This document shows positions 691-23,512 of a stretch of 23,512 bases of DNA, piece by piece; the first letter of the stretch is position 1; the number at the start of each line of letters is the position of its first letter. The stretch is taken from positions 1 through 23,512 of the forward strand of contig NW_021836602.1 of assembly GCF_006345805.1 (NCBI RefSeq). Direction: 5' to 3'. The notes under the pieces are model-generated. The model did no database searches. It saw only the letters and a program-made list of their open reading frames with translations, and was not told where the DNA came from. The translations under genes were made by a program, and so were the position numbers. The stretch is from Octopus sinensis (Eukaryota).

Positions 691-1555
691 GTAAAAACAT
701 GAAAAATATCACATTGAAGAGAATAAGTCAACATATGGAAGGTATTAGCTTTTCTTCTGAACATTACTGAATGATGAGCAAAACATAATAATAGTTTCAA
801 ACAAGGCTTCTGTTGCAAGTCATTCCTCTTCCACATTTTTCATACAGGCACTGATCTGTAGGTGTACAAGAGCTGCACATGCACCACATCAAATTCACTA
901 GTCATGAAGACTTGCAAAACTGCAATGACTATGGACATTGTCTCTTTATTAAGATTGGCAGATAAATAAATATGAAAAAATAAATCAATTTCTCCATTTC
1001 AAAATTATGTAGAGAGAAGCATGTCACAAAGGGGTTTTAAACTGCTTGAACTCATTGTCTCTTTTAGTTTAATCATTTTCTTCCATATTTCTGTAGAAAC
1101 TCTTGCCTTATTTCAATTAATTTTGAAAATAATGAATGTAGTAAAATAATTTTGTGATCATTAAGCTGATATTTAGAATATAAATGTGAAATTCTGATGA
1201 AAGGATTTTAGATCCCTTTAATTCCTTTTCTAACATATTTCTGTTAGAATACTGTTGTGGAAGGATCCTGACCACCCCCACATGACCAAAAGTGGACTGA
1301 CACATTTCAATAAAATAACTCTGTGAACTGTTTGCAGTTGACAGCATTTATTGTTCGTACTGATTTACTGTGTTAGTTTAATATCGTACCTCCCTACATT
1401 ATGTGTGAACATATTAATTTTGGGAAAGGTTATTTTAAATAACCGTATCCAAATATTTATTTGGGTAATACTATTCCCAAACCCTTGTATCTACTCCAAC
1501 ATTGTCATAACATTATTGGCAACAAGATATTCAAAAACCCCACAGACATAACGAT

Positions 1556-1597: not shown

Positions 1598-2076
1598 TTG
1601 GAACATGGAAGAATTACAAGCTTCAGTAATTGGCAGCAAGAACAGCTGATACTCAAGAAAACAGAAAATATATTGACCTCATTCGCCTCTGATACTGTTG
1701 CAAATTCCATCGGTGAATTCACATATAACCCAGATGAGGGTATTGCCTTTCCTGTGTACTACAGAAGGTATGAGGAGGTTTTTAAAGCAGAGTGCTTGGA
1801 CTGGCAAGATGAAGAAAAACCCTGACCCTTGTTAAGTTGGCCCCAGCTGAGCATGAAAAATACTGCAAAGGGACCGGTGGAAGTCTGTTTTCAAGAAACT
1901 GTTGATACCTTTTTAAAGATTTTCAGCAAGAACAGCTCTTTATTTAATATGTGCTGGCAATGCATGAATATTTCAAAAAAAAGAGGACAAAGATTTTATT
2001 ACATATGCTGGAATTAATAGGGAATGTGAGAAATTTAAAATTAATGAACCAACACCTGATATGCTTAAATGCTTAA
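1598..2076 (+). pseudogene. Gypsy/Mag gag remnant
   Basis: ANSIGEFTYNPDEGIAFPVYYRRYEEVF...QETVDTFLKIFS..SSLFN...RECEKFKINEPTPDMLKCL, with stops and frameshifts. This is the typical K02A2.6-like gag N-terminus. Confidence 0.85.
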
Positions 2077-2077
2077 A

Positions 2078-2225
2078 TGCACAACCCAAAAGTGACAGTC
2101 TGGTGTGCTGTTGGAAAAGCTGCCATCATTGGTTCTTTTTGAAGGCAATAATGAAAATGCAGTTACTGTGAATTCCAAGCATTACATTGAGATGATAAAC
2201 AACTTCTTTGTGCCCGAGTTACGAC
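2078..2225 (+). mobile_element. Internal DD41D mariner transposase fragment at the Gypsy gag/integrase deletion junction
   Basis: Encodes PKVTVWCAVGKAAIIG..EGNNENAVTVNSKHYIEMINNFFVPELR. No TIR or TSD. 2085-2214 is identical to the reverse complement of 12014-12143. Confidence 0.92.
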
Positions 2226-3235
2226 AATGTGTTGATGTAAGCACAAATAGTCATAGTGTCAACCACACTACAGAAGCGATTACTAATGAAATTTCATATT
2301 GGTCACCCAGGGATTTTGAGAATGAAATCATTAGTGTGAAGTTATGTTTATTGGCCTAGAATGGACTGTGACATTAAAGAACTAGTGAAAGCATGAGAGG
2401 TTGCGCCCTGGTTGCAAAAGCACCTACCAACTGTATCCAAAAACAGATATTCCATGGTCCTGGCTGCATGATCATTATGCAGGTCCACTTAAGGGTTCAT
2501 ATTACCTTGTTGTGGTGGACAGTTTTTCAAAGTGTTTACAGTAAGTTTTTTTACAGGAATTTTTCACCAAATATGGTATTACTGATATCATTGTGTCTGG
2601 TAATGGAACTCACTTTACTTGAGATGAGTTCAGAAAATTTTGTAAAATATTATTTATCAAACACGTGGCAACTCCGCTGTATCATACTAGATCAAATGGA
2701 CAAGCAGAGCGTTTTTTTAATACTTTTAAGAGAACTTTAAAAAAGCAAAAAATGAAGTAATGGATCACCTAGCACTTCAACAATTTCTAAGAGTGTACTA
2801 TGTAACATCTAATCCGAATACCCTGTCGGGAATGTCACCTGTGGAATTAATGTTCACTAGAAAGATCAGATCCATCTTTGACAAGTTGATTCCAAGTAAA
2901 AGTATAAAAAACGACAAACATCAAAAATACTTCAAAATTCTTCAAGTTAGGTGACAAAGTTTTTGTTAAATCGTATAGATATTGTAAAGAAAGCTGGGAG
3001 GATGGTGTAATTAAACTAATTGGAAGAATGTTATTCCTGGTAAAAGGAAAAAAAAATTTGAACATAAAAGACATGTAGACCAACTTGAAAAAAGATGTAC
3101 GAAAGAAACTGTCACAAGAGATGAAATTCTCATGGAAGTATTGTACAACATGTTTGAGGTGTTTTCAAGTAACAGAACAAGGAAAAGAACAGAAATACTA
3201 GAATTTAACCTTAGGCGTAAGAGATATGAAAACTC
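2222..3235 (+). pseudogene. Gypsy/Mag integrase remnant (H2C2 zinc finger, DDE core, C-terminal part)
   Basis: FHIGHPGILRMKSL..SYVYWPRMD, GCALVAKAP, YAGPLKGSYYLVVVDSFSK, LQQFLRVY..T.NPNT.SGMSP.ELMF.RKIRSIFDKLIP, read across frameshifts. Confidence 0.88.
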
Positions 3236-5074
3236 TGGACAGAATTTAATTCTCAAAAAGGAGAGAAGTTATGGAAAGCTTATTCACATGACCAAAAGTG
3301 GACTGGCACATTTCAATAAAATTAAAAAAACTCTGTGAACTGTCAGCAGTTGACAGCATTGATCATCCATATTGGATTGCTGTGTTTAGTTTAATATCGT
3401 ACCTATGTTTGGCTTAGTATGGGGATGGTGTAAGAAGAGAGAGATAGAAGTGGTTCAGGAAGGAGAATACTAGTGGGGTGGCATTCAAGATGTAAGATGG
3501 TGGAGAGGGAGGTGAAGAGGTTTAAGGGTGGGTCATGAAGGCAGACATTGAAAGGATGTTGGGAATGATAATAGATATGAGGGAGAGATAGCTGAAAGTA
3601 GAGAAAGGAAGTGGTGATCAATAGAAATGGTGTTGGAAGAGTAATGGGTGTTAGAGGATGATATTTGTTGGGGAATACTTGACTAAGTGGAGAGAGAAGG
3701 AAGGGAAGAACAAGGCCCTGCATGTACAAACCTAACCAAAGTGACTTTAGGACATTTTTTTGCTGAGAAGGATGGGTCTCCTGAAGCACAGTGAATCACC
3801 AATTATCTTGTCGTCCCTCCCATAAGGTTCAGCATCCAGAGATTAGCTTCCACTACTTTGTCTCAAGTTTTCTGGGTCTCCCTCTTACACAAGTTCCATC
3901 CACTTTAAGCAACCTGCACTTTATACATGTCATCATACATATGCATCATAGACCTATCCAGTATAGTCTTTTCTCTTGCACACTACATCTGGTTCCCCCG
4001 ATGTCTAGTTTTTCTCTCAGTATATCAGCACTCTGTCACATGCTGCACAGTGATATTGCACATCCATCAGAACATAGTAGCTTCATTTCTCTCAGTTGTT
4101 GCATTGCTATTCATATACAGGCATCATACAATCTAATTTTTACTCTAAGGGACAGTAAGACCTTTTGTTGCCAACAGAGGCAAAAGCTCTCTGAACTCTT
4201 TTCATTCCATTTTTATTTGAGCAACTATACTTCCAGAACAATCTTCTCCACTGCTAATTAGCTCACGCAGTTAACAGAAACTTTCTGCTATCTCTAGAGA
4301 GCCTCTAGAGTATTCATTCAAGAAAATATATTTCTCATGTAGCCTTAGTGTCAGTGGCTCCACTTTCTCTGTTAACTTTACTGTTGTTCCACTGCACTTG
4401 TACGTCTATAGCTTGCACTGAGTATGTCTAGCTTGCACAGGTGTGGAATTTCTGTCTGTTTTCTTGTTTAGCTAAGTTAACCTTGGGGAGGTTTGATTCC
4501 AAGTTTTGCTTCTGTACATGTAGTTTCTTTCCTAAGTCAATTACAGATTCTGTTCTGAGAATGGGATCATCAGCATATTGTAGTTCCCAAAGCAGCCAAT
4601 GTTAAATTCCTCTGTTATGGAGAACAATGATGAGTAGGAGGCGGCTAAGAACAGAGCTCTGAGGAACTCCCGCCTGCACTCTAATTTCATCACTATACGT
4701 ATGGCTAATCCTCACCTTACTGACAGCTCCCTTGTATATGGCTTGTATGACTCTCAAAAGACTTTTGTCTGCTTGTATCTTCCTCATAGACTCAGATCAC
4801 AGAGTGATGGACTCTTGTCAAAGGCTTTCTCTAAATCACTGAATGCCAAGTACTTCTGCAGTTGGCTGACTAAGGTAACATCAGCAATACTTCTCCCAGT
4901 CACAAAACTGCATATCTTCTACTCATGATTATGTTCCTAATTAATTTGGCTGTAAATCTCTCTATTAATTTCATTACCTGGTCCAACAATTTGATTCTTC
5001 TGTAATTACTTCCGTCCTTTGTAACTGCTGCTACACTAGTCATTGTATATCTTCTTGCATAGCCTGATTAATTA

Positions 5075-5203
5075 TGGGGGGGTGCTGAAAAGTTCCTGGC
5101 TGTAAGGGTATCACAAAAGTTGGAGGCCCAACTTTCTGTGTTCTTTTACAGGGCTTAGAAAAACTGAAGGACCACTGCAGTGTGTAAATTTGAGAAGGAA
5201 TAT
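5075..5203 (+). mobile_element. Truncated mariner-derived MITE inserted in the LINE
   Basis: TA (5073-5074) followed by TIR-like gggggtgctgaaaagttcctggc...ggcttagaaaaactgaaggacc, recognised as a common octopus MITE. The right TIR is missing. Confidence 0.6.
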
Positions 5204-5727
5204 CCTCCTGTATTTTCTGTTCCCCAAAGCATTCGTATATGGATGACTTAGTTGTGTCCTTCTCCACTAGAAATTTTAAGCATCTCAACAATAATTCCAG
5301 ATGGACCAAGGGCTTTCCCTGCTTTCATGTCCTTAATCTTTCATACTGCTATCTATCACTTGGTCCTTGTGTTGGGTCAGTGTTGGAGAGATACACTTGT
5401 GCATTTTCCTCAATAACCTTTCATTGCAGCACTTTCGTGCCTCTTTCTTTTCAGAATTGCTTTGTACAATCATCCTATTATCTATCCATACATACTTCTC
5501 TCCCACTTCTCAATTCTCTCTCATATACCATCTTGCAATCCAGAACACCTTATTCCTCTGATCTTCATGCTGTGGAATATTTACAGATCTCACCCTTTCT
5601 GTTCCTTCCTTTGCTATGTAAACCTGTCACCACCACCATGTCACCCTCAGTCAGAGTTGATCTGTTGCCCTCAGTAGGTTTTCCCCCGTAAGAACTTTGA
5701 GTTCTCTATGTTATACATCTCAGCGCC

Positions 5728-5954
5728 ATGGTGTTCCCAAAGCAACACTTTGCTAATAAATCGAGTGTGCTCCACACTGAATTTGCATGGCGCTTAGTGA
5801 CTTTGAAGCACAGAAAAATAATTTCGTGCTGCTTTGCAATCCATTTGCCATCAGTGTAGAAACTGCACCTGTACAGATTCAAATGGAGCTGAGAGAACTG
5901 CAGTGTAATGGGACATTAAAAGCTTAGTATAAGTTTGTGGGGCCCACACAGTTC
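5728..5954 (+). mobile_element. Internal hAT (GTF2IRD2/Buster-like) transposase fragment inserted in the LINE
   Basis: VFPKQHFANKSSVLHTEFAWR, then a frameshift, then SDFEAQKNNFVLLCNPFAISVETAPVQIQMELRELQCNGTLK. LINE coding sequence resumes on both sides. Confidence 0.8.
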
Positions 5955-6719
5955 ACTATTACTTCTTGTCAAGAGCTTCAACTAATACTTTTCTAAATTT
6001 CAGACTCTTTGCTGGGTCTTTGAGTTTCCATACTTTCCTTTTCCAGAATGGTTTGTTTTTCTAAGCCTTTCTAGCTCTAACTTTGAAGTCACTAATCAAC
6101 CTGTGTTGGGTTGTACATTCATTACCTGAGAAAGACTTTTCATTCCTGAGCATCTATCTTGTGTGCCCTCCAAATTGATAGGTGGTTGAGTGGCTGCTAG
6201 TTTCCTGAAGATGCTGTGGCAGATCATCAGATCATTTGCATTACAGGACACAAGCAGCCTTTTCACCCTCCTCATTTCTATACCCAAAGCCATAACCTCC
6301 ATGCACCCAAGGAAATCTGTGAGAATGCTGCCTATCATGTCCACTGAAATTACCAGCCACAACAATAAAGTTACTGTCATTTGCTATTGAGGTAGTTTGC
6401 ATAAAGGACCTTGAAAAATTGGTCCTGCCAGCCCAAAATGTGGAGCATGAGCAGAGATTAATTTAACTGTTGATTTTATCTAAAACTAAACTCAACTTAA
6501 TTGCCCTATCACACACACTTACTACCTCAATTACCTTATCTAATTTTATCTACACATTTTTGCCAAAAGTATGCTTACATCACCCATCCTGTCACTGCTA
6601 CATACCCAAAAATAATTTAAACCTCTCTTCCTTACCCATGAGAAATCTAGCTAAGGCTCCTTTCCATCTTACCTCTCGCACACAACAAGAAGGCATGGAT
6701 GTTGCTGAGGGCAGCAAAG

Positions 6720-6825
6720 TACTCTATTTGTTGATGCCGCCATTTGGACTAATTTCATGCTGATATTAAAATGGTCCTGCGGGCCAGATGAAATTGCTGC
6801 ACAGGCCAGGAGTTTGACGTGTCTG
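6720..6825 (+). mobile_element. Possible hAT right terminus
   Basis: gcgggccagatgaaattg...ggccaggagtttgacgtgtctg resembles hAT subterminal/TIR ends. No partner end was found. Confidence 0.3.
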
Positions 6826-7780
6826 ATCTAGTGCAAGCAACAACAAAGATGTGAGAAGATAGGGTTTCAGTCTATCTAGAAGGGAGCAGAAGGTGGGTAC
6901 ATAGCAAGAATTAATATCCACATACTTACCCATACACGCACACTTATACATCTTGACTGCATAACTACACACGCACGCGTGTGCGCACATACGTGTATAC
7001 AATTCAACATCCCCACATATATTCAAGTACATGGTGGAAGAAGGGAATACACTTCAATATAAAATTTATACATAACGAAGGAGTGAGGTTGTGTAACGAG
7101 TTGCTAGGGGAGAAAAATTCACGTTTCAATCAAAAATAGTGGTGGTTTTGGAGGTAGAAAAAGTGAGGTGGGATTTGAGCTGTTTTAAACTGTATTCGAA
7201 TCTGTTGTAGCATACTCATAACTAGATGAACTTCATAAATTTATTTTGTAGTATTTAATTATTAATACTGCTAGAAGTATATACTGATACATTTAATGGT
7301 TAGATATATATAAAACAGTCAATAATAAGAAAAAGATGACATGCAGAAGAAATGGAACCTACTGTGGCTCAGAATGTGAGAGACAGGAAATGCACCAATC
7401 TATAGGGTTAAAAAAAAAATGAAATGTAAAATTCATCTATGGAAACAGGTACACCAATTATATCTAGTAATGCACGACACAAGTCACAAGACTGAAAGTT
7501 GGTGGAAATTCATATCAGGAAGGTATATTGACTTCTAAAAAAGCATTATATTTTCAATATCAGTTAAGCTTTTTGAAATACCACAACCACAATTTCTTTT
7601 TTTAATGAAGTAAGAGATCTAATCACTATTTGCTAATCATGTTGCTAATCACTTGTAGTGAAGCAGAAAGTATGAACTTTTATGAAATATATAATTAGTA
7701 AATTTGGTTGTTCACTTAGACCACTATATATATATTTCCTGAGGCAATTCAGGTTTTAAATTGTTATTTTATAATTTTAG

Positions 7781-7880
7781 CATGGAAATTGAAAATCTAC
7801 ACACCCAAATTGAGCAAATGGCCCAGGATAATGGTGTGAAAGAGAAAGACTTGGAGGATAAGGCCAAAACAATATCTCAG
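7781..7880 (+). CDS. TPR: TPR coding exon A (first exon seen in window): MEIENLHTQIEQMAQDNGVKEKDLEDKAKTISQ
   Basis: Acceptor ataattttAG (7779-7780), donor GTacat (7881). 100 nt, open frame. Ends KAKTISQ and splices to LKKIGRKYK, matching vertebrate TPR KVKTITQ-VKKIGRRYK (recalled sequence). Confidence 0.9.
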
Positions 7881-8372
7881 GTACATTTTACTGAACCTAG
7901 TTACTAATTACTGAGCAAATTAGTAAATCTACTTTGCTCCTCTTTTTACAATTAATCAATATCATTATTTGCCCTGATTTTTCCTTGTATCTTTGACAGT
8001 AAATTGAATTAAATTGGACAAGGTCTTGGATGATAGATGACATAGTGTTCTTTTGTGAAGTCATTGTTCATAGCCCATCAAATTGTAATCAATCTCACAA
8101 ATAACTTTGCTCTACCTTTGGCTGGGTAGTTTTGCATTTGAAAAGATTGGTTGTTGATTACTAAAAGTGTATCCTAAAGAGACAATCAATTCTCAGTAAT
8201 TGGTTTTAGATGGTTGGAAGTAGATATCTTACTGAGATATAGTTCATCCTTGTAAACAGTATCAACTGAAGTAACTTCTATGATAACCTCACTTCATATA
8301 TTTAAAGTTATCGTTATATGTATGTATGCATAAATCCAAGTAGTAAATAACTATATTGTTAATTTTAATCAG

Positions 8373-8615
8373 CTGAAGAAAATTGGACGTAAGTACAAAG
8401 AACAAGCTGAAGACACTGCCAAGCAGTTGAATGAACTGAGAGATATGCACCTAAGTAGTAGCAATGTAGATACCAGTAAACCTGACCAGATGACAGCTGA
8501 TACTAATGAAGCTATGGAACAGTTGAAGAAAAAGGCAGAAGAAGCTGAGCGAAAATTGAAAGAAGTTGAAGAAATTAAGGCTTCATTCCAAGAACAAATG
8601 AATAAATTGGAACAG
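8373..8615 (+). CDS. TPR: TPR coding exon B, coiled coil: LKKIGRKYKEQAEDTAKQL...EQMNKLEQ
   Basis: ttttaatcAG acceptor, GTtatt donor. 243 nt, phase 0-0. Carries the conserved Tpr/Mlp KKIGR(R/K)YK motif and an E/K/Q-rich heptad pattern. Confidence 0.95.
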
Positions 8616-9099
8616 GTTATTTTTGTTTTTATTCACCCTGTTGTATTGCTATCTTTTATGAGTTTACTTGACACCTTTGGCCCTTGAAATAATGGTAAGG
8701 TTTATAGTTATTAACATATAGGATCACATCAAATGGCTGTCCTATTGAACAAATTATAGTGGGGAATACATGTGTAGTTGGTTTGTTTAGCATGGAAACT
8801 TCAGAATTGTTGTGGGGGGTTATTGTTTTGCCCTAGATCTATGTTCAAAAGTATCTCATCCATGGCCATCTCAGTCTTTCCCTCACCCCCACCCCCTGAC
8901 ATTTTCCAGATAATTTGGTCTCAGTAATCAACCAGCTTTAGCTGGCTAGAAGTAGATATCCTACTTAAAAACATTTTATCATAGAGTATCTAACGCTACA
9001 TTTCCAGCCTTTTTCATTTTTTTCTTTTTAAATTGTAAGGTGCATTTTCAGAAAGATTTGGTTGCTATTTCTAGCAAGTCTAATTACCATGTTACCTGT

Positions 9100-9865
9100 G
9101 GCTTATTGTTGTAGCAATTAATTTGCAACTGTTAGGTAATGAGATTAAATCATATCAAAGTAAAATCAGCCCTCTCCACTTTTCTATCCAAGTTACTGTT
9201 ATTCAAATGTAGCATAAGTTGCCAGTTCTTCCAGTTTCCAAGCCTTTCTGAACTGGAGGAGAAAAATTATACCTGGATGAGCTATGCAGAAGCATTTGAC
9301 AAATTTCAGGGTATTTATTTTTGCTTAAAATACCAGTCTGGATACTTCCTAGATATCAGTATTGAGGAAACAAGAATAGTGGCAGAACTGGTTTCACTTT
9401 AAAATAACATTGAGCCGAGGCCAAAGTTCAAAAGTTCATGTCAGGATTTTTAATTGCAAAAATATATTTCTGACAGCTACCCTGCACTATGGAACAAAAT
9501 CAAAATGTACTTTATTTCCTTTCCAACATCATATTCTGTAAAGTGGAATTTCAGTGCAGTCACCTAGATTCTTTCTAAGCAAAGAAACAGACTGAAAATT
9601 ACTGAACATGAGGATCTAAGATTACGTCTTAATACCTCTCTGTCTGATGTCATATAACTAATATTCTTGTACCATGTACAGCCATCACATTAAAAATATG
9701 AAAACAATGTAACTACAGGTGGGATGTAAATTTACTTTTTGATATTTAAAAACTGTGAAATACTGTTGTTTTGAATTTGCAGTAGAAAGAGATTTGTGAG
9801 GTGATGGCCTAGGAATATAACCTGAGTGCAAGGGGCAGCAACCCCAAGAAGTTTGGGAACCATTG
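9100..9865 (+). mobile_element. 3' part of a hAT-Charlie (ZBED5/SCAND3-like) DNA transposon
   Basis: IKVKSALSTFLSKLLLFK..FQFPSLSELE, YPALWNKIK..FISFPTSY..FSAV..ILSKQRNRL.ITE..DLRL. Ends with the hAT-type terminus aagtttgggaaccattg (9849-9865). Confidence 0.8.
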
Positions 9866-10393
9866 GTCTCTAGCAAAATATATCTTCTATATATTTTTGA
9901 TATGATAAATAGGTATAATGTAAAAATTATCACAAATGTTCTCAAAATATCTCAAAGAAACACTTTATATATAATCACTTATTTTTAATGGAAACAATTG
10001 AAAAGACATGCATATTCTCAAAGTAGCTGGAGAAGATTGTTATAATCACTTATTCTTAATACAAATAATTGAATATAGCAGTAGAGAAAGTGAGGATGTG
10101 CATGCCACAATGATTAAAGATATTTTAATGAAAACAATTGAATAGAGTGATAGAGAGCAAGTGATGGAGAGAGAGAGAGATCTATCACAATGAAAGTTAG
10201 CTTTGGGACTGAACTTCATTTTGATTATAAAACTATATTAAATGCATGAAACTTAAAAAAATATTTTAGACTTTGATTATTGCTTTCCTTTAGCATAAGT
10301 CACATGATTCCAACTAATAAATAAGCAGCTTTCTTTATTATAGTGTAGACATGTAATTTTTGTATTGTTTTTTTTTCCTTCTCCCTCCCCCAG

Positions 10394-10589
10394 CAATTGA
10401 ATGAGTCAAAGGAAAGTGAGACTCAACTGAAAAGTAAAACCCAAGAGATGGAGACTACCCAGAATAGATATAAGAACCTCCTTCAGAGTGCTAAAACCAG
10501 GATGACCAGTCAGAAAGAACAACTGGAGAAGATGACTGCTGAAATGAATGAACAAAAGAAGTTGCTGGAAAATATGGATAAGGCTAAAA
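10394..10589 (+). CDS. TPR: TPR coding exon C, coiled coil: QLNESKESETQ...NLLQSAKTRMTSQKEQL...MDKAK
   Basis: Long pyrimidine tract plus cAG (10391-10393), GTaagt donor at 10590. 196 nt, phase 0-1. LLQSAKTRM aligns with the TPR AIVAAKSKI region. Confidence 0.93.
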
Positions 10590-10860
10590 GTAAGTGGATG
10601 GATTCTGGACATAGTCCAGTAAACCTTAAGATTTCTTTGACATTGAATGTAGGTGGAGAGTTTAACTACTGATAGGATAGTCCATGTGGATGTAGGTATT
10701 TGTGTAAATAACTATGCAAACACGACAATTTCATGCTTAAATAGATATAGTATAAGTTTGAATTGGCTGTGCAATGATGTCTTACTATAGCACTGAAGCA
10801 AGGTTTAACTCTTCACCTCACAGTGAATAATAACAAACATCACTTCACAACCACACATGC

Positions 10861-10880
10861 ATGTGTGTGTGTGTGTGTGC
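10861..10880. repeat. (TG)n microsatellite
   Basis: atgtgtgtgtgtgtgtgtgc. Confidence 0.9.
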
Positions 10881-11519
10881 ACACATAACAATTTAAATCA
10901 GAACAACTAAAATTTAAGTATTACACCTCACTGGGAATTAAAGAAGCATGCAAACACATTCTTTCTATGTTGCTGATGTGCAGAAAAAAGGAGTAAGTTT
11001 CTTGACAAAGTGTTTTATGGTTTATTGATCACTCTTCAGAAAAGACATACTCAGCTTCCTTTCCTGGCCAATACCACAGGTCAGCTGCTGTGTAAAGAAA
11101 TCATGAAGTGGTGTAGCACATTACTAGACACCCTAATTTGCATACTTGTGCTTTTGACTGACTTGTCATTAATTAAATAATGTCTATTTTATGCACAGCA
11201 CTGTAAATTAGAACTGAAATAGTTAAGATACTTCACAGCCCTACTGTGAGTGAGTTAAGAATGTAAATTCAATCTTAAGACTTTGTATTTTGTCAGACAA
11301 AAGTCTAAACATTGCTCAATACACAATTATATTTCTTTCAAACTTGCTCTTGAATAGGATTGACCATGCAAAGTACATTAAACATTGAGATTTGTGATTA
11401 AATTTGCATACATTACATTTATGCATATGTTTCAGCATTGGAAAATTGCTTATGGTCTTTTATATATACACTTCTACACTCCAACATGTGTATATCTGTA
11501 TGTGTGTGTGTCAGATGTA

Positions 11520-13425
11520 CAGGGTAGAGCAGAGAGGACAGAATATTTTTGAAAAATTCACAAAATCATTAATTTTTGCTGCAAACAAATGTTATTGACA
11601 TCAGTGTATTCATATTCAATTAGTTTTTGTCAAAATCAGATGTGGAAAACAGCATCCATCCTGTGGTATCCATTTTCATTGATGCATTTCTGAAGGCATT
11701 CTTGGAGATTGGCCTCCACTCTCTCCAGCATTGCTCTGTTGATTTGGGTGACTTCCACGCAGATAGCTTCCTTCATATTGTACAGGGCTTATGCACATAC
11801 AGATGTGCCTTGAGGTTTCCTCACAAGAAAAAAATCAGACATGGAGAAATCAGGGGACCAAGGAGGCCAAGGAATGTCAGCAGACCTGGAAATAAGGTGG
11901 TCAGTGGAGAGAGGGCAAAGAACATACATTGATGCTCTGGCTGTGTGGAGCATCACCCCATCCTGCTCACACCACACACACATTAAAGAGGCATACGTTT
12001 TCATAATAATTTAGGCACAAAGAAGTTGTTTATCATCTCAATGTAATGCTTGGAATTCACAGTAACTGCATTTTCATTATTGCCTTCAAAAAGAACCAAT
12101 GATGGCAGCTTTTCCAACAGCACACCAGACTGTCACTTTTGGGCTGCACAGCGGTCTTTCATGTTGTTCTCTCAGATTTTCATGAGCCCAATAACGACAG
12201 TTCTGTTGGTTCACCATGCAAATGAGATGAAAATGAGCTTCATCACTCATTAACAAAATGAGGTTGTCATTTGCCTCAAAAATTGCTTCCATCTGACATG
12301 CAAAGTTAAGCTGCTGTGCAGAGTCCCATGGTTTCAACTGCCGTCCAGTGACTAACTTTTACAGGTGGAAATGCAGGTCTTCATGCGAAATATGCCTTAT
12401 CAGTCAAATACCAATGCCAAGTTCCGTGGAATGCCCACAAGCAGAGCGATTTTGACCCCATATTCAAGTTTGTCTGACATAGTAAAGATTGTTTGCCAAC
12501 ATAACATGGCAGTCCTGGTTTAGGATGAACGTTGCTGTAATTTGGCCCCAGGAGTCATTGTTTCCAGCTGGCTATATGACATGATCAGTGTCCTTATATT
12601 TTCGACCAAGGGAATTTAGCACCCTCACTCAGCTCAAAACAATATCTGTGTATTGTGATTTTCTGGTTATATTCCTTCATCAGCTCAGAAGAATTGTTCG
12701 GCTAGAGGTGGTACTGCCAAATTCCCATTTGAAATATATAGTTTTCAAAGTGACAACTAGTCACTGATCTATAAACTAGAAAATTACTTTTTTTTTTACT
12801 TTTCTGTACTGATGAAGGGAAATAACCTGGAAATCGCGATACACAGATATTGTTTTTGTGCTGAGTGGGAGTGCTAGATTCTTTTGTTTGAAAATATAAG
12901 GACACAGATCGTGTCGTATAACCAGCTGGAGACGAGGTCTCCTGGGGCTAAATTACAGCAACATTTGTCCTAAACCAGGACTGCCATGTTATGTTGGCAA
13001 ACAATCTTTACTACAAAGTACTGTTGCTGAATATCTCTTGTTGTGAGATTTTTAAAAAAAATAGTAATTTGTCTGACATGTTCCACATTTTCCGAGGTCC
13101 ATACCATTTATGGCACTTTCACCAGTCTCCTATTCATTAGTGTACCTCATGTACGAAGTGTATTCACCCAGTCTGATTTCAGTGAATGTTGAAGTGGCGC
13201 CAAAATTCATGCTGAGCTGCTGTGACAGATTCATTATTCATCAGGTAACTGTCATAGGCAAACAAACCATGCTCTATTGTCCACAGTACCATGGCTTCAC
13301 CTGAAAAGAAAAAGAAAATGCTATGATACCATGGACTGAATGGTACCTGTTGGACGTATGTCTCTTCCCCTGTGGTTGAGGTAATAGCCATTTCAAAAAC
13401 GTTCATCCCTCTCTGCCCCACTCTG
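11520..13425 (-). mobile_element. Full-length decayed Tc1/mariner element, DD41D (rosa/Visitor) type
   Basis: TA TSDs at 11518-11519 and 13426-13427. TIRs of ~34 bp, CAGGGTAGAGCAGAGAGG... and CAGAGTGGGGCAGAGAGG... (8 mismatches). Minus-strand transposase remnants: YDSYLMNNESVTA.Q.EF.RHFN, MSDEAHFHL..VNQQNCRYWA.EN, and QDG-(41 aa counted)-DFF. Confidence 0.92.
12481..13067. mobile_element. Foldback/MITE insertion (~210-bp inverted arms) inside the mariner transposase
   Basis: 12480-12690 is the reverse complement of 12802-13013, with scattered mismatches. The whole insert is flanked by the direct repeat TTTGTCTGACAT (12469-12480 and 13068-13079). The mariner frame (ENVEHVRQ...RSA..HSTELGI) joins across it. 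Confidence 0.88.
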
Positions 13426-13439
13426 TATATGTTAGATAT

Positions 13440-13582: not shown

Positions 13583-13787
13583 GTTATTCAACTTAAGTTT
13601 CAATCTTGCAATTTCTTCAGGAATATCACATTATTCCTGGAGAAGTCACAATTTTGAAACTTAAATCGAATAACTCCAAATTAAAGTGTCATTTGTTATT
13701 TTATTTTATGACACACATGCACATATGTAGTATGTAGATATATGTAGCATGCTAAAATATCTGTATTGTTTATTTTTAAATGTTCAG

Positions 13788-13948
13788 CTGAAAGTGTCAT
13801 GCGAGAGAACAGTATTAAGAGTCAATATGAGAGTCGTATTAACAACCTTGAGAGAGAGCTGGAAGAAGCAAGACGAGCTGTTAGTGCTGCTCCAGCTGCC
13901 GGTGACTTAAAACAGATCCAGAAAGAAAATGCTGAACTACAAGCTAAG
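13788..13948 (+). CDS. TPR: TPR coding exon D: ESVMRENSIKSQYESRINNLERELEEARR...ELQAK
   Basis: tgttcAG acceptor, GTtact donor. 161 nt, phase 1-0 keeps the frame. KSQYESRINNLEREL matches the TPR hallmark KSQYEGRISRLEREL. Confidence 0.96.
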
Positions 13949-16452: not shown

Positions 16453-16640
16453 GCGTAGGACTGGTGACAGGCTATGAATTCTCACTCCCTTTTCTTTCAT
16501 CAGACACTGACACCTCCCCTCATTTTCACACCCTTATAGTTCTCTACTTGTATGTTAGGTAATTATTTGTTGAGTGGATAGAACAAATGTTATTGAATTT
16601 CACTCGAAATAAATGTTTTGTTTGTAATTACCATTTTTAG

Positions 16641-16873
16641 CCTCCCTGTGGGTGAAGCTCCTAAGATGGCCAACATAAGGCCAATGACCTCAACAACACC
16701 AGCTCCTGTGAGGCAGACAGCTGTCCAGCATGCATCTGCTGCTGCTGCTGCAAAAGCAACTGCAAGTATAAAACCCATGGCAATTGCTTCCACCACAGCT
16801 AGTCCAGTTTCTGCCACAACACCAACAGCCACTGTTATGCCAACCACCATTACAGCTCAAGAACCTCATGATG
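16641..16873 (+). CDS. TPR: TPR coding exon F, start of disordered tail: LPVGEAPKMANIRPM...ASIKPM...PTATVMPTTITAQEPHD
   Basis: ccatttttAG acceptor, GTaaat donor. 233 nt, phase 2-1. ASIKPM and TTPTATVMPTT match the vertebrate TPR motifs ASIRPM and TTPTATVMPTT. Confidence 0.95.
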
Positions 16874-17409
16874 GTAAATATTCTTTACAAATGAAATGTT
16901 CTTTTACTCTTCCTATTTTTTCTCTTTCATTCTTCTTAAGCCTCTTTCTCTCTCAGCAACACATCTCCTTTCTCTTATTTCATTATCTGACTTTGCATGT
17001 CATCATTATAGTATTTATGAAATTTAGTACCACCAAGTAATGGAGTTGAACTGATTGAGTGAATTTCTTCCCACTAAAAATCTCTGGCTTTGGATCTGTG
17101 TTAGAAATCATTTTTATTATTACACCTGAGCCGACCATTCTGTGGAGCTTATACAAATGTTCTCACAGAAAAGACAAGGCAAGAGTTTACTCTAATTGAG
17201 AAGAGAGTTATTACACTGGAAAGAAAACTGGGTGACAGCTATCTGTAGAACATATTGGTTGATGTGGTTCAAATAAAAGGCAAATCAATGAAACTATTAA
17301 AATGGTGAGTTTTCTGATTGTCTTTTTTTTTTTATCCACATATTTCTGTGAACAGCCAAATCATTGGTTCACAGCATTTCTAGTGGTAAGAATCACAAAG
17401 AAGAGTCTT

Positions 17410-19069: not shown

Positions 19070-19338
19070 GTAAGTGTATTGATGGTGACTGTTGACAAGT
19101 AAATAAAAAAATAAAAAGATTCACTCTATTTCTCTCTCTAAATTTTATATAGCTTCTTGACTTTTCTTTTACCTTTTGAATTAAATACTTACTTTTCTTG
19201 TATACTTTTCTTAAATACTTTCTTTCTTGCATGAGTTTATTAAAAATTTTAAAGATCTTTATTCTTGATTAAACATATTGGCCTCTTTGCCATCTCAGTA
19301 TACTCTCTCTTGCTTTGTTTTATTTCCACTTCCTGTAG

Positions 19339-19654
19339 AGTCTCCTTTATCTGTAACACCAACGTCAGTTGCACCAATTCAGCAGGTGGATGTGGAATAT
19401 CCTTCAATGTTGGTGATAGCAAGTACTTCTACTGTGACATCAACACCTGGTTCAGTTGTTTTAGTATCTTCATCCTCAAGCACTTCCACTAACTCCTCAC
19501 TCTCTGTCACTTCGAACTTGAGCAGTCAAGAAGGGGAAGGCAGCGATATTCAACAATCAGCTGTTTCTGCAGGGAATGGCCAGAGTCAATCCCAACACTC
19601 ACAAGCATCAGCGTCTCAGTCTACCATTAAAAGAACACGAGAGGATGTTGAAGC
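19339..19654 (+). CDS. TPR: TPR coding exon H, S/T/Q-rich, ends TIKRTREDVEA
   Basis: cttcctgtAG acceptor, GTatgt donor. 316 nt, phase 1-2. KRTRED corresponds to TPR KRTREE in the NLS region. Confidence 0.92.
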
Positions 19655-19872
19655 GTATGTACTTACTTTTGTTAGTCTCATTTAGCCAAGTTAATTACTG
19701 TGACAGCTCATTAACTAAAGGATTATTATGGAGTCATAAACTCCCATGGAAAGTTTCTGGTAAAGATTCTTAATATCTCACTTTCTCTTGAAATAGTTAC
19801 TGTGGAATCGGTATACATTTCTACTATCAGTAACTGTTGTGTTAATTATCTATGGAATTAAAATCTTTCTAC

Positions 19873-19938
19873 AAGTCTGAAGAAAGCTGTAACACACTAT
19901 TCTGTAAGTCTGAAGAAAGCTGTAACACACTATTCTGT
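19873..19938. repeat. Perfect 2 x 33-bp tandem duplication
   Basis: AAGTCTGAAGAAAGCTGTAACACACTATTCTGT at 19873-19905 and 19906-19938. Confidence 0.97.
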
Positions 19939-20168: not shown

Positions 20169-20391
20169 GTAAGTCTACCCCTTTTGTTTATTTTTTATTT
20201 ATTTTTTATTTCTTCTCTCTCAAATTATTTCAGATTCTTTGGTTTCCATTTAAAATACTTTTCTATCACAGGTATATAGAAATTGTTTTTTTTTTTCCTT
20301 TTCTTTATCATTTATTCTTTTGGCCCTGACAACTGAGATTACTAAAGTAGATGTGTGGCACACTAATCTCAATTTTAAAATGATATTTCAG

Positions 20392-20484
20392 GTCCCCTCT
20401 GCTAGTTCTATACCTGTGATTACTGTAACTGATGGCCAAAATCATACCATTATTTTAGAATCTGGTGATTCTCAGAAAGGACAG
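20392..20484 (+). CDS. TPR: TPR coding exon J (last seen in window): VPSASSIPVITVTDGQNHTIILESGDSQKGQ
   Basis: atatttcAG acceptor, GTaagc donor. 93 nt, phase 0-0. The gene continues beyond the window. Confidence 0.82.
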
Positions 20485-21743
20485 GTAAGCCCTCTCACGC
20501 AAATAGTTTAGTTTACACCTCTGGCTTTATCAAACTATCTAGCTAATACCCTCGTAGAATTTCTGTAACTCAGACATGCACACACATGTATGTGCATGCT
20601 ACCTGATGGTGTTTATATTGTAGACACCTGAAAATAGAATTTGTAACTCTTTTTGAGTTAGAAATTGTTATATTCTTGGCCTCAGCAAACAATAGGTATT
20701 GTGGAGTAGAGGTAAGTTTTCAGTGAATTCTATTTCACTATTTCCTTGAAAAAGGCATGAAATTTCAACTTCCTTTTCTTTCTTTTCTAAAAACTCCTTG
20801 GTGTTAGCTACTCTGTAAAAAGGCTAAGATTAATGTATTAATAATATTCCTGCATTCATGAAATATTTTTAGAGGGTAGTTAAAATATTAGACCTGCTAA
20901 TCATATCATCAATAGTTCAGTTATATTGGCATTCATTGCCTTTATACATTGCACCATATGGTGTTGCTTAATTTACCTTAAAACAACTGTATGAATGTGT
21001 AGGGTGGCAACCATGTAGATATATTTGCGAAACATTTACTCTGTAAGTCATGAAAGTTGTCACATTTAGAAAAGCCCTCCAACTTATAATGTCATAGAAA
21101 AATATACATAAAATTATCACCAAAGAAATATGCTTCCCTCTCCTCCCTGGAACAAGATAGACTGTTCTTATGCCTCTCTCATTATACTACCGTATTCTTT
21201 AGGGAGGTATTCTTTGGATGGAAGTATATTATGTAGGAGTGGTAGCCTGCATCTGCTGGTATAAATATTTCCTGGTTAGATTTTCTTGTTGCACTTGTGA
21301 GAGTGTGATTGGCATATACATCTGCCTAAATTCGAGTTAGATGTATGAAGTACAAATAGAAAGGGCATTTGGCTGAGTTTCAACAAGGTACTGGATTAAC
21401 AGGTTGAGAAGTCAGTAGTTTGTATCATGTGACTGTGACAGTGATATGTCAATAGCGAAGAACTCTGCATCTCACTGTAGGTAGCCCATATTCTAAACAC
21501 TGCTATATGCAGTGGAGCAGCAGAACTGTAAAAGTCAAGACCTGTTTTCAGCTTGTCCAGTAGATGAACTGGATTCTGCTTTGTCTAGGAATTAGATTTA
21601 TGGTCTATATTGATGCATGTTTATGATCATAGACGGTTTAGAAATCAAGTGAATACCCGGCAATTAGCAGAGTCGCTAAAGAAGCAAGTAACTGATTTTA
21701 AAAACTGGGCTTAATCCAAAGTCTTTGTGAAAACTTATCCTAA

Positions 21744-22372: not shown

Positions 22373-23435
22373 CCCTTTCGTTACCAAACCGCCCGAAAAA
22401 ATTTTGGTTAATGTGACCAAACCGCCCAAAGTCGCCCGAATTTACCTATTCATATTTAAATGAGAATATCAGAGCAAATCTCTTTAGTACATTCATGAAA
22501 ACACGTGATTATACTTCGTAAACAGTTCATCTACAGTTTTGTACAAAAATCGAAGTGTAATTTTAATTCCGTGAATTTTGGGAGATTTTTTTCCGAAATT
22601 TGTTTCTATCGTGTTTTCAAAATTTGTAATTCTGACAAAAAATGGATACGAATTTCATTATATCAAGCAGCGAGTCAGAATTCGAAGGATTTTCTACTGA
22701 AGACCTTCATAAATCTAACTCTATGACTGAAAAAAAAAAGCATGTGGTATTTGATAATGAATCTGATGTTTCATTTTCTGAAAGTGAAAACAGTGAATTC
22801 GAGAGCTCCGACATCAATAAAGAAAATGAATTGGCACCTGAATGGAGTGAAAATTTAAAAACTGTTTCTTTCGGTGATTTTTCTGAAGAAACTGGACCAA
22901 GCCACAGACTTTCCCAGAAGAGTAAAGCCTTAGACTATTTTTTTTTTACTTTTTCGAATGAGCCTATTTGAAATCATTACGGCGGAAACGAACCGTTATG
23001 CTAAATGTAAAAAAAACGAAAGAAAGGATAGTTAGTGGTTTCCCATAACCTTAAATGAAATTAAGACTATTTTGCCATTAATATTATTATGGGTATCAGA
23101 AAGTTACCCAGAATAACAAATTCTATCGTAAAATTTTGTTGTATACCCAATTGAATATTAGCTAATAACCCATTTTCTATAGCGATGTTTGAACAAAATT
23201 TTAATAATTTTATATTTTGTTGAATTTACCTGTATCTACCTGCAATTAGTCACTTTGTGACAAAAATTATAGTATAGAATTGGTTGAGAACATTTCATTA
23301 AATTATCTTCCAAAATTCACGTTCATATATTGATAAATAAAAAAGTTATAGTTTGTTTAATGAAACCAGACTAAATTTATGATTATGTTAGAAATTAATT
23401 GAAACACATACGTCAGAAATATAGTAACGAAAGGG
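22373..23435 (+). mobile_element. Internally deleted piggyBac transposon (1063 bp)
   Basis: Perfect TTAA TSDs (22369-22372, 23436-23439). Perfect 12-bp TIRs CCCTTTCGTTAC. Subterminal ACCAAACCGCCC twice (22383, 22416). N-terminal transposase remnant inside. Confidence 0.95.
22642..23115 (+). pseudogene. piggyBac (PGBD4-like) transposase N-terminal remnant
   Basis: Acidic N-terminus, WSENL...FSEETGP, LDYFF..F.NE, then after frameshifts EIITAETNRYA, WFPITLNEIK, YFAINIIMGIRKLP. The catalytic DDD core is absent. Confidence 0.88.
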
Positions 23436-23512
23436 TTAAGGAAAAATAAGTTTGAATTAAAAAGCTAAAACAGCATATAGATATATATCTCAGAGGTGAC
23501 TCCAGGTCATCA

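Follow-up and report, generated by a model that had tools for sequence, protein, structure and literature searches.

A perfect 130-nt inverted repeat between decayed octopus transposons, probably made by recent local gene conversion or templated repair

How can the remnants of two long-decayed transposons share 130 nt without a single difference? The question is raised by a stretch of 23,512 nt from Octopus sinensis (NCBI RefSeq assembly GCF_006345805.1, contig NW_021836602.1, positions 1 to 23,512), hereafter the window, in which a block on the plus strand (block A) equals the reverse complement of a second block (block B) that lies 9.8 kb away in a dead element of the Tc1/mariner type (mariner B). 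Our analyses suggest that this identity probably stems from recent local gene conversion or templated repair, without crossover, between mariner B and a short mariner-derived fragment around block A (fragment A). The features on which this account draws are collected in Table 1.

The identity as such is robust. Position-wise recomparison reproduces the 130 of 130 matching positions reported in the original prediction (2085-2214 versus the reverse complement of 12014-12143), a repeat search recovers the same inverted pair, and self-BLAST returns it as 133 nt at 99.2% while detecting no further similarity between the neighborhoods of A and B besides the block. In 23.5 kb, only around 1e-65 pairs this long would be expected to arise by chance, which excludes a chance match. 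The borders of the block are sharp, with a mismatch immediately outside either end (2084, A versus G; 2215, C versus T) and ungapped identity between A and B that drops to background beyond them; the flanking strings quoted previously for these positions are correct. Compared to intact relatives of the mariner family, the block carries around 14 substitutions, a 5-nt deletion, and 4 to 5 decayed CpGs, all of them common to A and B. The deletion (TTACT) disrupts the motif IGPYFFE, and SKHY stands in place of SERY when compared to nine relatives, so that the shared lesions described earlier are real. It was also rightly stated that the block contains no CpG at all (the observed/expected ratio of the window is 0.22). 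The window has neither Ns nor gaps and, so far as the assembly can be trusted, the repeat is real.

The element around block B is a full-length, TA-flanked transposon of around 1.9 kb, with the TA adjoining CAGAG... at one end and ...CCCTG at the other. Translated on the minus strand around 12014-12143 with its frameshifts corrected, it matches intact DUF4817 transposases of 364 aa, best of all P0001 (68% identity, E 2.5e-94), a protein that carries PF16087 DUF4817 and that covers mariner B with residues 1 to 362 in a tblastn search. This homology places mariner B among the Tc1/mariner-type elements with their DDE/D catalytic region and N-terminal helix-turn-helix; the family was assigned via P0001, and Pfam returned no match for any of the three uncorrected frames of mariner B. 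At the DNA level, the intact relatives L004 to L007 (around 1.37 kb) align to 13433-13069 and 12478-11515 of the window, with 81% nucleotide identity across the 957 nt at the 3' end. Either end of mariner B matches the perfect 36-nt terminal repeat of L007, and its own two terminal repeats have decayed, with gaps and 9 mismatches in 40 aligned columns (22%), close to the 8 of 34 counted earlier. The reading frame is broken by many stops, frameshifts, and a nested palindromic insert of 534 bp and, judged by this reading frame, mariner B is a dead copy. The insert resembles a miniature inverted-repeat transposable element (MITE), and its arms of around 211 nt are 13.3% diverged, the outermost 46 nt of both arms being nevertheless identical. 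We had considered this inverted repeat (12480-13013) as a second mariner copy from which to gauge divergence within the family and rejected it as a palindromic insert nested in mariner B. As a separate observation, L004 to L007 (from ENA/JGI metagenome assemblies) and L008 seem to be intact copies of the same family; L004 to L007 encode an identical transposase of 364 aa, their terminal-repeat ends match those of mariner B, and direct reading of L007 showed its 36-nt repeats to be perfect. The presence of this family in several unrelated assemblies suggests that its activity in some host may be ongoing or have ceased only recently.

The surroundings of block A are of a different kind. While both blocks had been pictured as lying within decayed mariners, only block B does so; fragment A is an internal piece of around 148 nt that corresponds to positions 726 to 876 of the 1.37-kb L007, has neither terminal repeats nor a TA target duplication, and is covered by P0001 at 2077-2227 in tblastn. 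It is flanked directly by gag-like and integrase sequence of a retroelement, and arrival of A by transposition was consequently rejected, which also removes the earlier premise of two independent old insertions. The gag-like part scores 26.5 bits against DUF7083 (cut-off 27), and its homology to four relatives (P0301, P0309, P0208, and P0233) stops exactly at 2075 (...LKCL). Homology to integrase begins at 2220 (YDNVLM) and extends to 3242, with 34.6 bits for Integrase_H2C2 (E 2e-8) and a weak match to rve; tblastn of P0301 against the retroelement gives E values of 3e-47 and 4e-22. Together, the gag-like region and the integrase mark a Ty3/gypsy-like long terminal repeat (LTR) retroelement. 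Pfam and tblastn detect no protease, reverse transcriptase, or RNase H between 2075 and 2220, where only fragment A is found, and by this homology the retroelement is internally deleted, with fragment A bridging the deletion between gag and integrase. LTR-like direct repeats of 113 to 120 nt (84% identity; 10.6% mismatches plus 7 gap columns) stand where LTRs would be expected, and neither TG..CA ends nor a matching target duplication were seen for them. The sequence TACGAC at the right junction may be a 6-nt microhomology, since it is shared by the retroelement (as Tyr-Asp codons) and by the ancestral mariner (TTACGAC). Independently of this locus, the retroelement relative P0301 (782 aa) has a gag-like and an integrase part and likewise nothing of protease, reverse transcriptase, or RNase H in between; other loci may thus share the gag-integrase arrangement, or P0301 may reflect a faulty gene model.

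Evidence on the origin of the block comes from the mosaic structure of fragment A, which emerges from an alignment of A, B, and the nine relatives with the ancestral state taken from the latter. To the left of the block, ancestral TGCA(C/T)AG corresponds to TGCACAA at A and TGTGCAG at B; to the right, ancestral TGAATTACG(G/A)C corresponds to CGAGTTACGAC at A and TAAATTATTAT at B. The ends of fragment A (2078-2084 and 2215-2219, or up to 2225) are mariner-like yet unlike B. They match the ancestral mariner at 9 of 12 unambiguous positions (p = 4e-4), or at 15 of 18 if TACGAC is counted (p = 3e-7), which shows them to be mariner-derived. From B they differ at 6/12 (unambiguous positions) to 9/18, with 8 of the 9 differences being transitions, whereas none of the 130 core positions differs (Fisher p = 9e-8 to 7e-10). 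Because B is derived at six of the nine differing sites and A at three, the core in this alignment has a single history and the ends have two separate ones. The identical tract thus sits between homologous, diverged sequence on either side, as for gene conversion, and these flanks are very short.

Table 1. Coordinates of the features in the window (block, fragment, element, and candidate exons)
Feature	Position	Strand	Basis
5' LTR-like direct repeat of retroelement	1279-1391	+	repeat search, alignment
Gag-like part (DUF7083) of decayed LTR-type retroelement hosting A	1634-2075	+	Pfam DUF7083 (E 7e-6); tblastn with P0301, P0309, P0208, P0233
ATGCTTAA, 8-nt tandem repeat, 2.6 copies, abutting and overlapping left junction	2061-2081	+	sequence read directly
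Mariner-derived fragment A, ~148 nt, internal	2078-2225 (about)	+	blastn against relatives, alignment, tblastn
Block A, 130-nt core, reverse complement of block B	2085-2214	+	position-wise comparison (130/130), repeat search, self-BLAST
Integrase part (H2C2 zinc finger and rve core) of retroelement hosting A	2220-3242	+	Pfam; tblastn with P0301 (E 3e-47)
TACGAC, possible 6-nt microhomology at right junction	2220-2225	+	alignment, tblastn
3' LTR-like direct repeat of retroelement	3285-3404	+	alignment to 1279-1391
Candidate coiled-coil exon between A and B (243 nt, phase 0)	8373-8615	+	cag|CTGAAG ... GAACAG|gt
Second candidate exon between A and B (196 nt)	10394-10589	+	polypyrimidine tract, cag|CAATTG ... 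GCTAAAA|gtaagt
Mariner B, decayed Tc1/mariner-type element, DUF4817-type N-terminus	11515-13433 (about)	-	protein match, DNA alignment to relatives, terminal repeats
Block B, same 130 nt within full-length dead mariner-type element	12014-12143	-	position-wise comparison, alignment
Palindromic MITE-like insert, TA-flanked, nested in mariner B (arms 12480-12690 and 12802-13013)	12480-13013		repeat search, self-BLAST
Next candidate exon, downstream of B	13788-13948	+	reading phase continues from 10394-10589

How recent the copy event was can be judged against three repeat pairs of the window that were each presumably identical at formation and that serve as age markers: the LTR-like repeats (10.6% divergence; 9.7% outside CpG), the palindrome arms of the insert in mariner B (13.3%; 10.0% outside CpG), and the terminal repeats of mariner B (22%; 17.5% outside CpG). 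At a divergence of 10%, 130 identical positions would be expected with a probability of around 1e-6, and with no difference in 130 nt, the divergence accumulated after the copy event is at most 2.3% (95% bound). With the age markers at 10 to 22%, this event appears to postdate both elements by far. With 111 aa spanning the block as query, a search retrieved nothing above 79% identity and no copies from the same genome, the closest relatives being 79% identical in protein and 83% in DNA, and two metagenome DNA scans for the deletion-bearing sequence of the block gave no matches. Exact-protein look-ups of the open reading frames (ORFs) at 2105-2359 (A junction), 12086-12337 (B), 3791-4261, and 11627-11932 found none on record. 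A protein homology search with the A-junction ORF yielded no candidates and is unreliable, as it rejected candidates for sharing fewer than three 5-residue words with the query, contrary to P0001, which shares more than ten (NAVTV ... VPELR).

The mosaic and the age markers together support the earlier proposal of gene conversion or templated repair from the local copy, with the transfer being recent and non-reciprocal, which we would refine into an account of two steps. At some old date, the region of the LTR-type retroelement that encoded protease, reverse transcriptase, and RNase H would have been deleted, and ~148 nt from the interior of a mariner would have come to span the gap. They could have been filler DNA, copied while a break was being repaired and possibly templated by the mariner at 9.8 kb distance, or else what was left of a nested copy; we infer this origin of fragment A. 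Much later, and with the mosaic as support, fragment A would have engaged in a non-crossover homologous exchange with the inverted, full-length, dead mariner B, by ectopic gene conversion or by synthesis-dependent strand annealing after a break. This exchange would have overwritten 130 nt, nearly all of the available homology, and left the outermost 7 and 5 to 11 nt of the fragment unconverted. A templated copy from B that then diverged and was later homogenized again would be the simplest account of the proximity of A and B. Transfer from B to A is weakly favored by the decay of ancestral CpG sites, which affects 5/5 in the block, 7/9 in the flanks of B, and 0/2 in the ends of A.

That the exchange would have been of the non-crossover type is suggested by a candidate plus-strand coiled-coil gene whose exons lie between and beyond the blocks. 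The first three candidate exons (8373-8615, 10394-10589, and 13788-13948) were checked for canonical splice sites and consistent reading phase; all three run in the same direction, and the reading phase is maintained at both of the junctions that connect them. The continuous phase from the second to the third exon, across B, indicates that no inversion of the sequence separating A from B has occurred, and with exon order, orientation, and phase intact, a crossover or inversion between the blocks was rejected. Searches of Pfam and PDB with the candidate exons returned generic coiled-coil noise only and no gene name. Downstream of the coiled-coil part, the plus strand holds Ser/Thr/Ala-rich ORFs at 16618-17040, 19278-19685, and 20320-20511, seen as ORFs only.

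Several points weigh against this two-step account. A substrate of 148 nt with a prior identity of around 85% to 90% is short for homologous recombination. The unconverted ends amount to only 12 to 18 nt, so that the mosaic rests on few sites, and six of these (TACGAC) may belong to the retroelement. These ends also differ by around 50%, more than the 10% to 20% expected for two copies of a family, an excess that CpG hotspots together with tracts ending at clustered mismatches can explain only partly. Finally, we infer both the direction of transfer and the whole of the older step.

The alternatives have to be measured against the same evidence. Without any exchange, A and B could descend from one already-defective source of the same subfamily and have remained unmutated across 130 CpG-free nt while their CpG-rich surroundings decayed. 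This would fit a block without CpG in a strongly CpG-depleted window and a right flank of B that was ancestrally CpG-rich and is 26% diverged from relatives, and the comparison draws on relatives of the family from outside this genome. However, the age markers still diverge by around 10% outside CpG, which leaves the probability of around 1e-6 given above, and of the nine differences in the flanks, most fall outside ancestral CpG sites. Mariner B has moreover decayed from the perfect terminal repeats of its relatives and hosts an old nested insert, and its block should consequently hold private mutations; yet A shares every one of them, and we regard a history without exchange as unlikely. An artefact of assembly, consensus, or polishing, in which the true A and B differ and one has been overwritten by reads or consensus of the other, draws plausibility from a block length near that of short reads, and homogenization by polishing had already been named as a caveat in the original prediction. 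Against it stand a window free of Ns and gaps and the heavy divergence of mariner B outside the block, given that multi-mapped reads should have drawn all 1.3 kb of B to the family consensus. Reads over the 148-nt fragment would also be anchored by its unique retroelement flanks, making it hard to see how an artefact could reach within 7 and 5 nt of the fragment ends, and we consider this explanation quite unlikely.

A single recent event could also be imagined, in which around 130 nt were copied from B as filler when the retroelement deletion was repaired and the mariner look of the adjoining 7 and 5 to 11 nt is due to coincidence or junction mutagenesis. Fragment A does bridge a deletion junction with the TACGAC overlap and the 8-nt tandem repeat as features, and repair is known to leave templated filler at its junctions (PMC2943611, PMC2567098). 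Nevertheless, the ends match the ancestral mariner (9/12 to 15/18; p = 4e-4 to 3e-7) and do so where B carries the derived state, a pattern beyond the reach of random error, and the positions adjoining the block are mismatches instead of microhomology; a single filler event therefore seems highly improbable. The original prediction had further invoked selection for a perfect RNA duplex; such selection might, for example, act through exon circularization, ADAR editing, or small-RNA production and keep the identity perfect. In its favor, block A lies upstream of exon 8373-8615 and block B downstream of exon 10394-10589, in different introns flanking two exons of the plus-strand gene, the energy predicted for cofolding the A/B duplex is -241.6 kcal/mol, and intronic inverted repeats of 30 to 40 nt suffice for circularization in reporter constructs (PMC4201285). 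Duplex functions, however, tolerate mismatches and do not require perfection, the block alone has no unusual fold (z = +1.2), and selection would leave the sharp mosaic borders unexplained and still require a copy event to create the identity. Beyond the location of the blocks in introns flanking two exons, this idea finds no support, and it is the least probable of the explanations considered here. We therefore continue to favor recent local non-crossover exchange between fragment A and mariner B.

Whatever made the blocks identical, their placement could have consequences for RNA. Once transcribed into pre-mRNA, the two blocks could pair perfectly over 130 bp and would then join the intron preceding exon 8373-8615 to the one that follows exon 10394-10589, i.e., complementary repeats in flanking introns as in the geometry typical of circular RNAs. 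Self-BLAST shows no competing repeat pair in the introns that hold A and B, which lie around 6.2 kb and 1.4 kb, respectively, from the exons that they bracket. Intron geometries of this kind promote back-splicing in other systems (PMC4201285, PMC4617980). It is conceivable, though very improbable, that the pairing made by conversion drives back-splicing of the two exons into a 439-nt circular RNA or dense adenosine-to-inosine editing in the pre-mRNA of the coiled-coil host gene, with selection or recurrent conversion possibly keeping the pairing perfect.

Other repeats and element fragments are scattered over the window. A palindromic element of the foldback or MITE-like type occupies 6-407, with arms at 6-117 and 295-407 that are around 89% to 96% complementary and enclose around 177 nt, and a 92-nt palindrome with 76% self-complementarity (13583-13674) is found just upstream of the exon at 13788. 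On the minus strand at around 4400-5000, a decayed reverse-transcriptase fragment of the long interspersed nuclear element (LINE) type was recognized from its translation only (...DLEKAFD..., ...YADD...). What appears to be the start of a piggyBac-like transposase at 22642-23512 (plus strand) comprises an ORF with an acidic N-terminus (22642-22971) and, after it in a different frame, the motif ...ETNRYA...W.P.T..E...; the element runs past the end of the window and was assigned by motifs only, a Pfam search of the ORF being without match. Two tandem 33-nt units that are 94% identical (19867-19932) are located just downstream of candidate exon 19278-19685.

If real, the locus would present a clean example, from a single site of an invertebrate genome, of ectopic conversion acting on transposon remnants that are very short (around 150 nt), old, and dead. 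Such a case would imply that decayed debris can be homogenized anew long after its decay, which may mislead divergence-based estimates of transposon age, and that a perfect intronic inverted repeat, with a geometry favoring exon circularization and the editing of double-stranded RNA, can arise from decayed repeats in one step. The process itself is already known, and no new mechanism is revealed.

Gene conversion between transposon copies is documented and enriched within around 10 kb, with Drosophila transposable elements as an example of ectopic conversion (PMC11226609, where Fawcett and Innan 2019, PMC6598467, is also cited). Similar to these cases, the octopus locus combines a short identity tract in diverged paralogues with partners in cis within around 10 kb and a non-crossover outcome, and dead copies can take part. 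Unlike them, one partner is here no more than an orphan fragment of 148 nt lodged in a different element, conversion would have covered nearly all the homology that it offers, and the partners are inverted. In this last respect the locus resembles arm-to-arm conversion of palindrome P6 on the human Y chromosome (PMC3723533), where inverted copies are kept identical within one chromosome without inversion of the spacer; compared to arms of kilobases to megabases, however, only 130 nt are concerned, the exchange looks like a single event instead of a sustained process, and it involves transposon debris and not genes. Filler DNA, as described for synthesis-dependent microhomology-mediated end joining (SD-MMEJ; PMC2943611) and for nuclear insertions of mitochondrial DNA (PMC2567098), shares with fragment A that a foreign, non-transposable piece bridges a large deletion, with TACGAC as possible microhomology. 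At 148 nt, fragment A is long compared to SD-MMEJ-type inserts, and filler DNA would account only for its origin and not for a perfect core with diverged ends. Finally, complementary repeats of transposon origin also occupy the introns that flank internal exons in the case of Alu pairs and of the DNAREP1 repeats of Drosophila laccase2 (PMC4201285, PMC4617980); unlike these circularizing pairs, the octopus blocks share the geometry alone, at distances of several kilobases on one side and more than a kilobase on the other from the exons between them.

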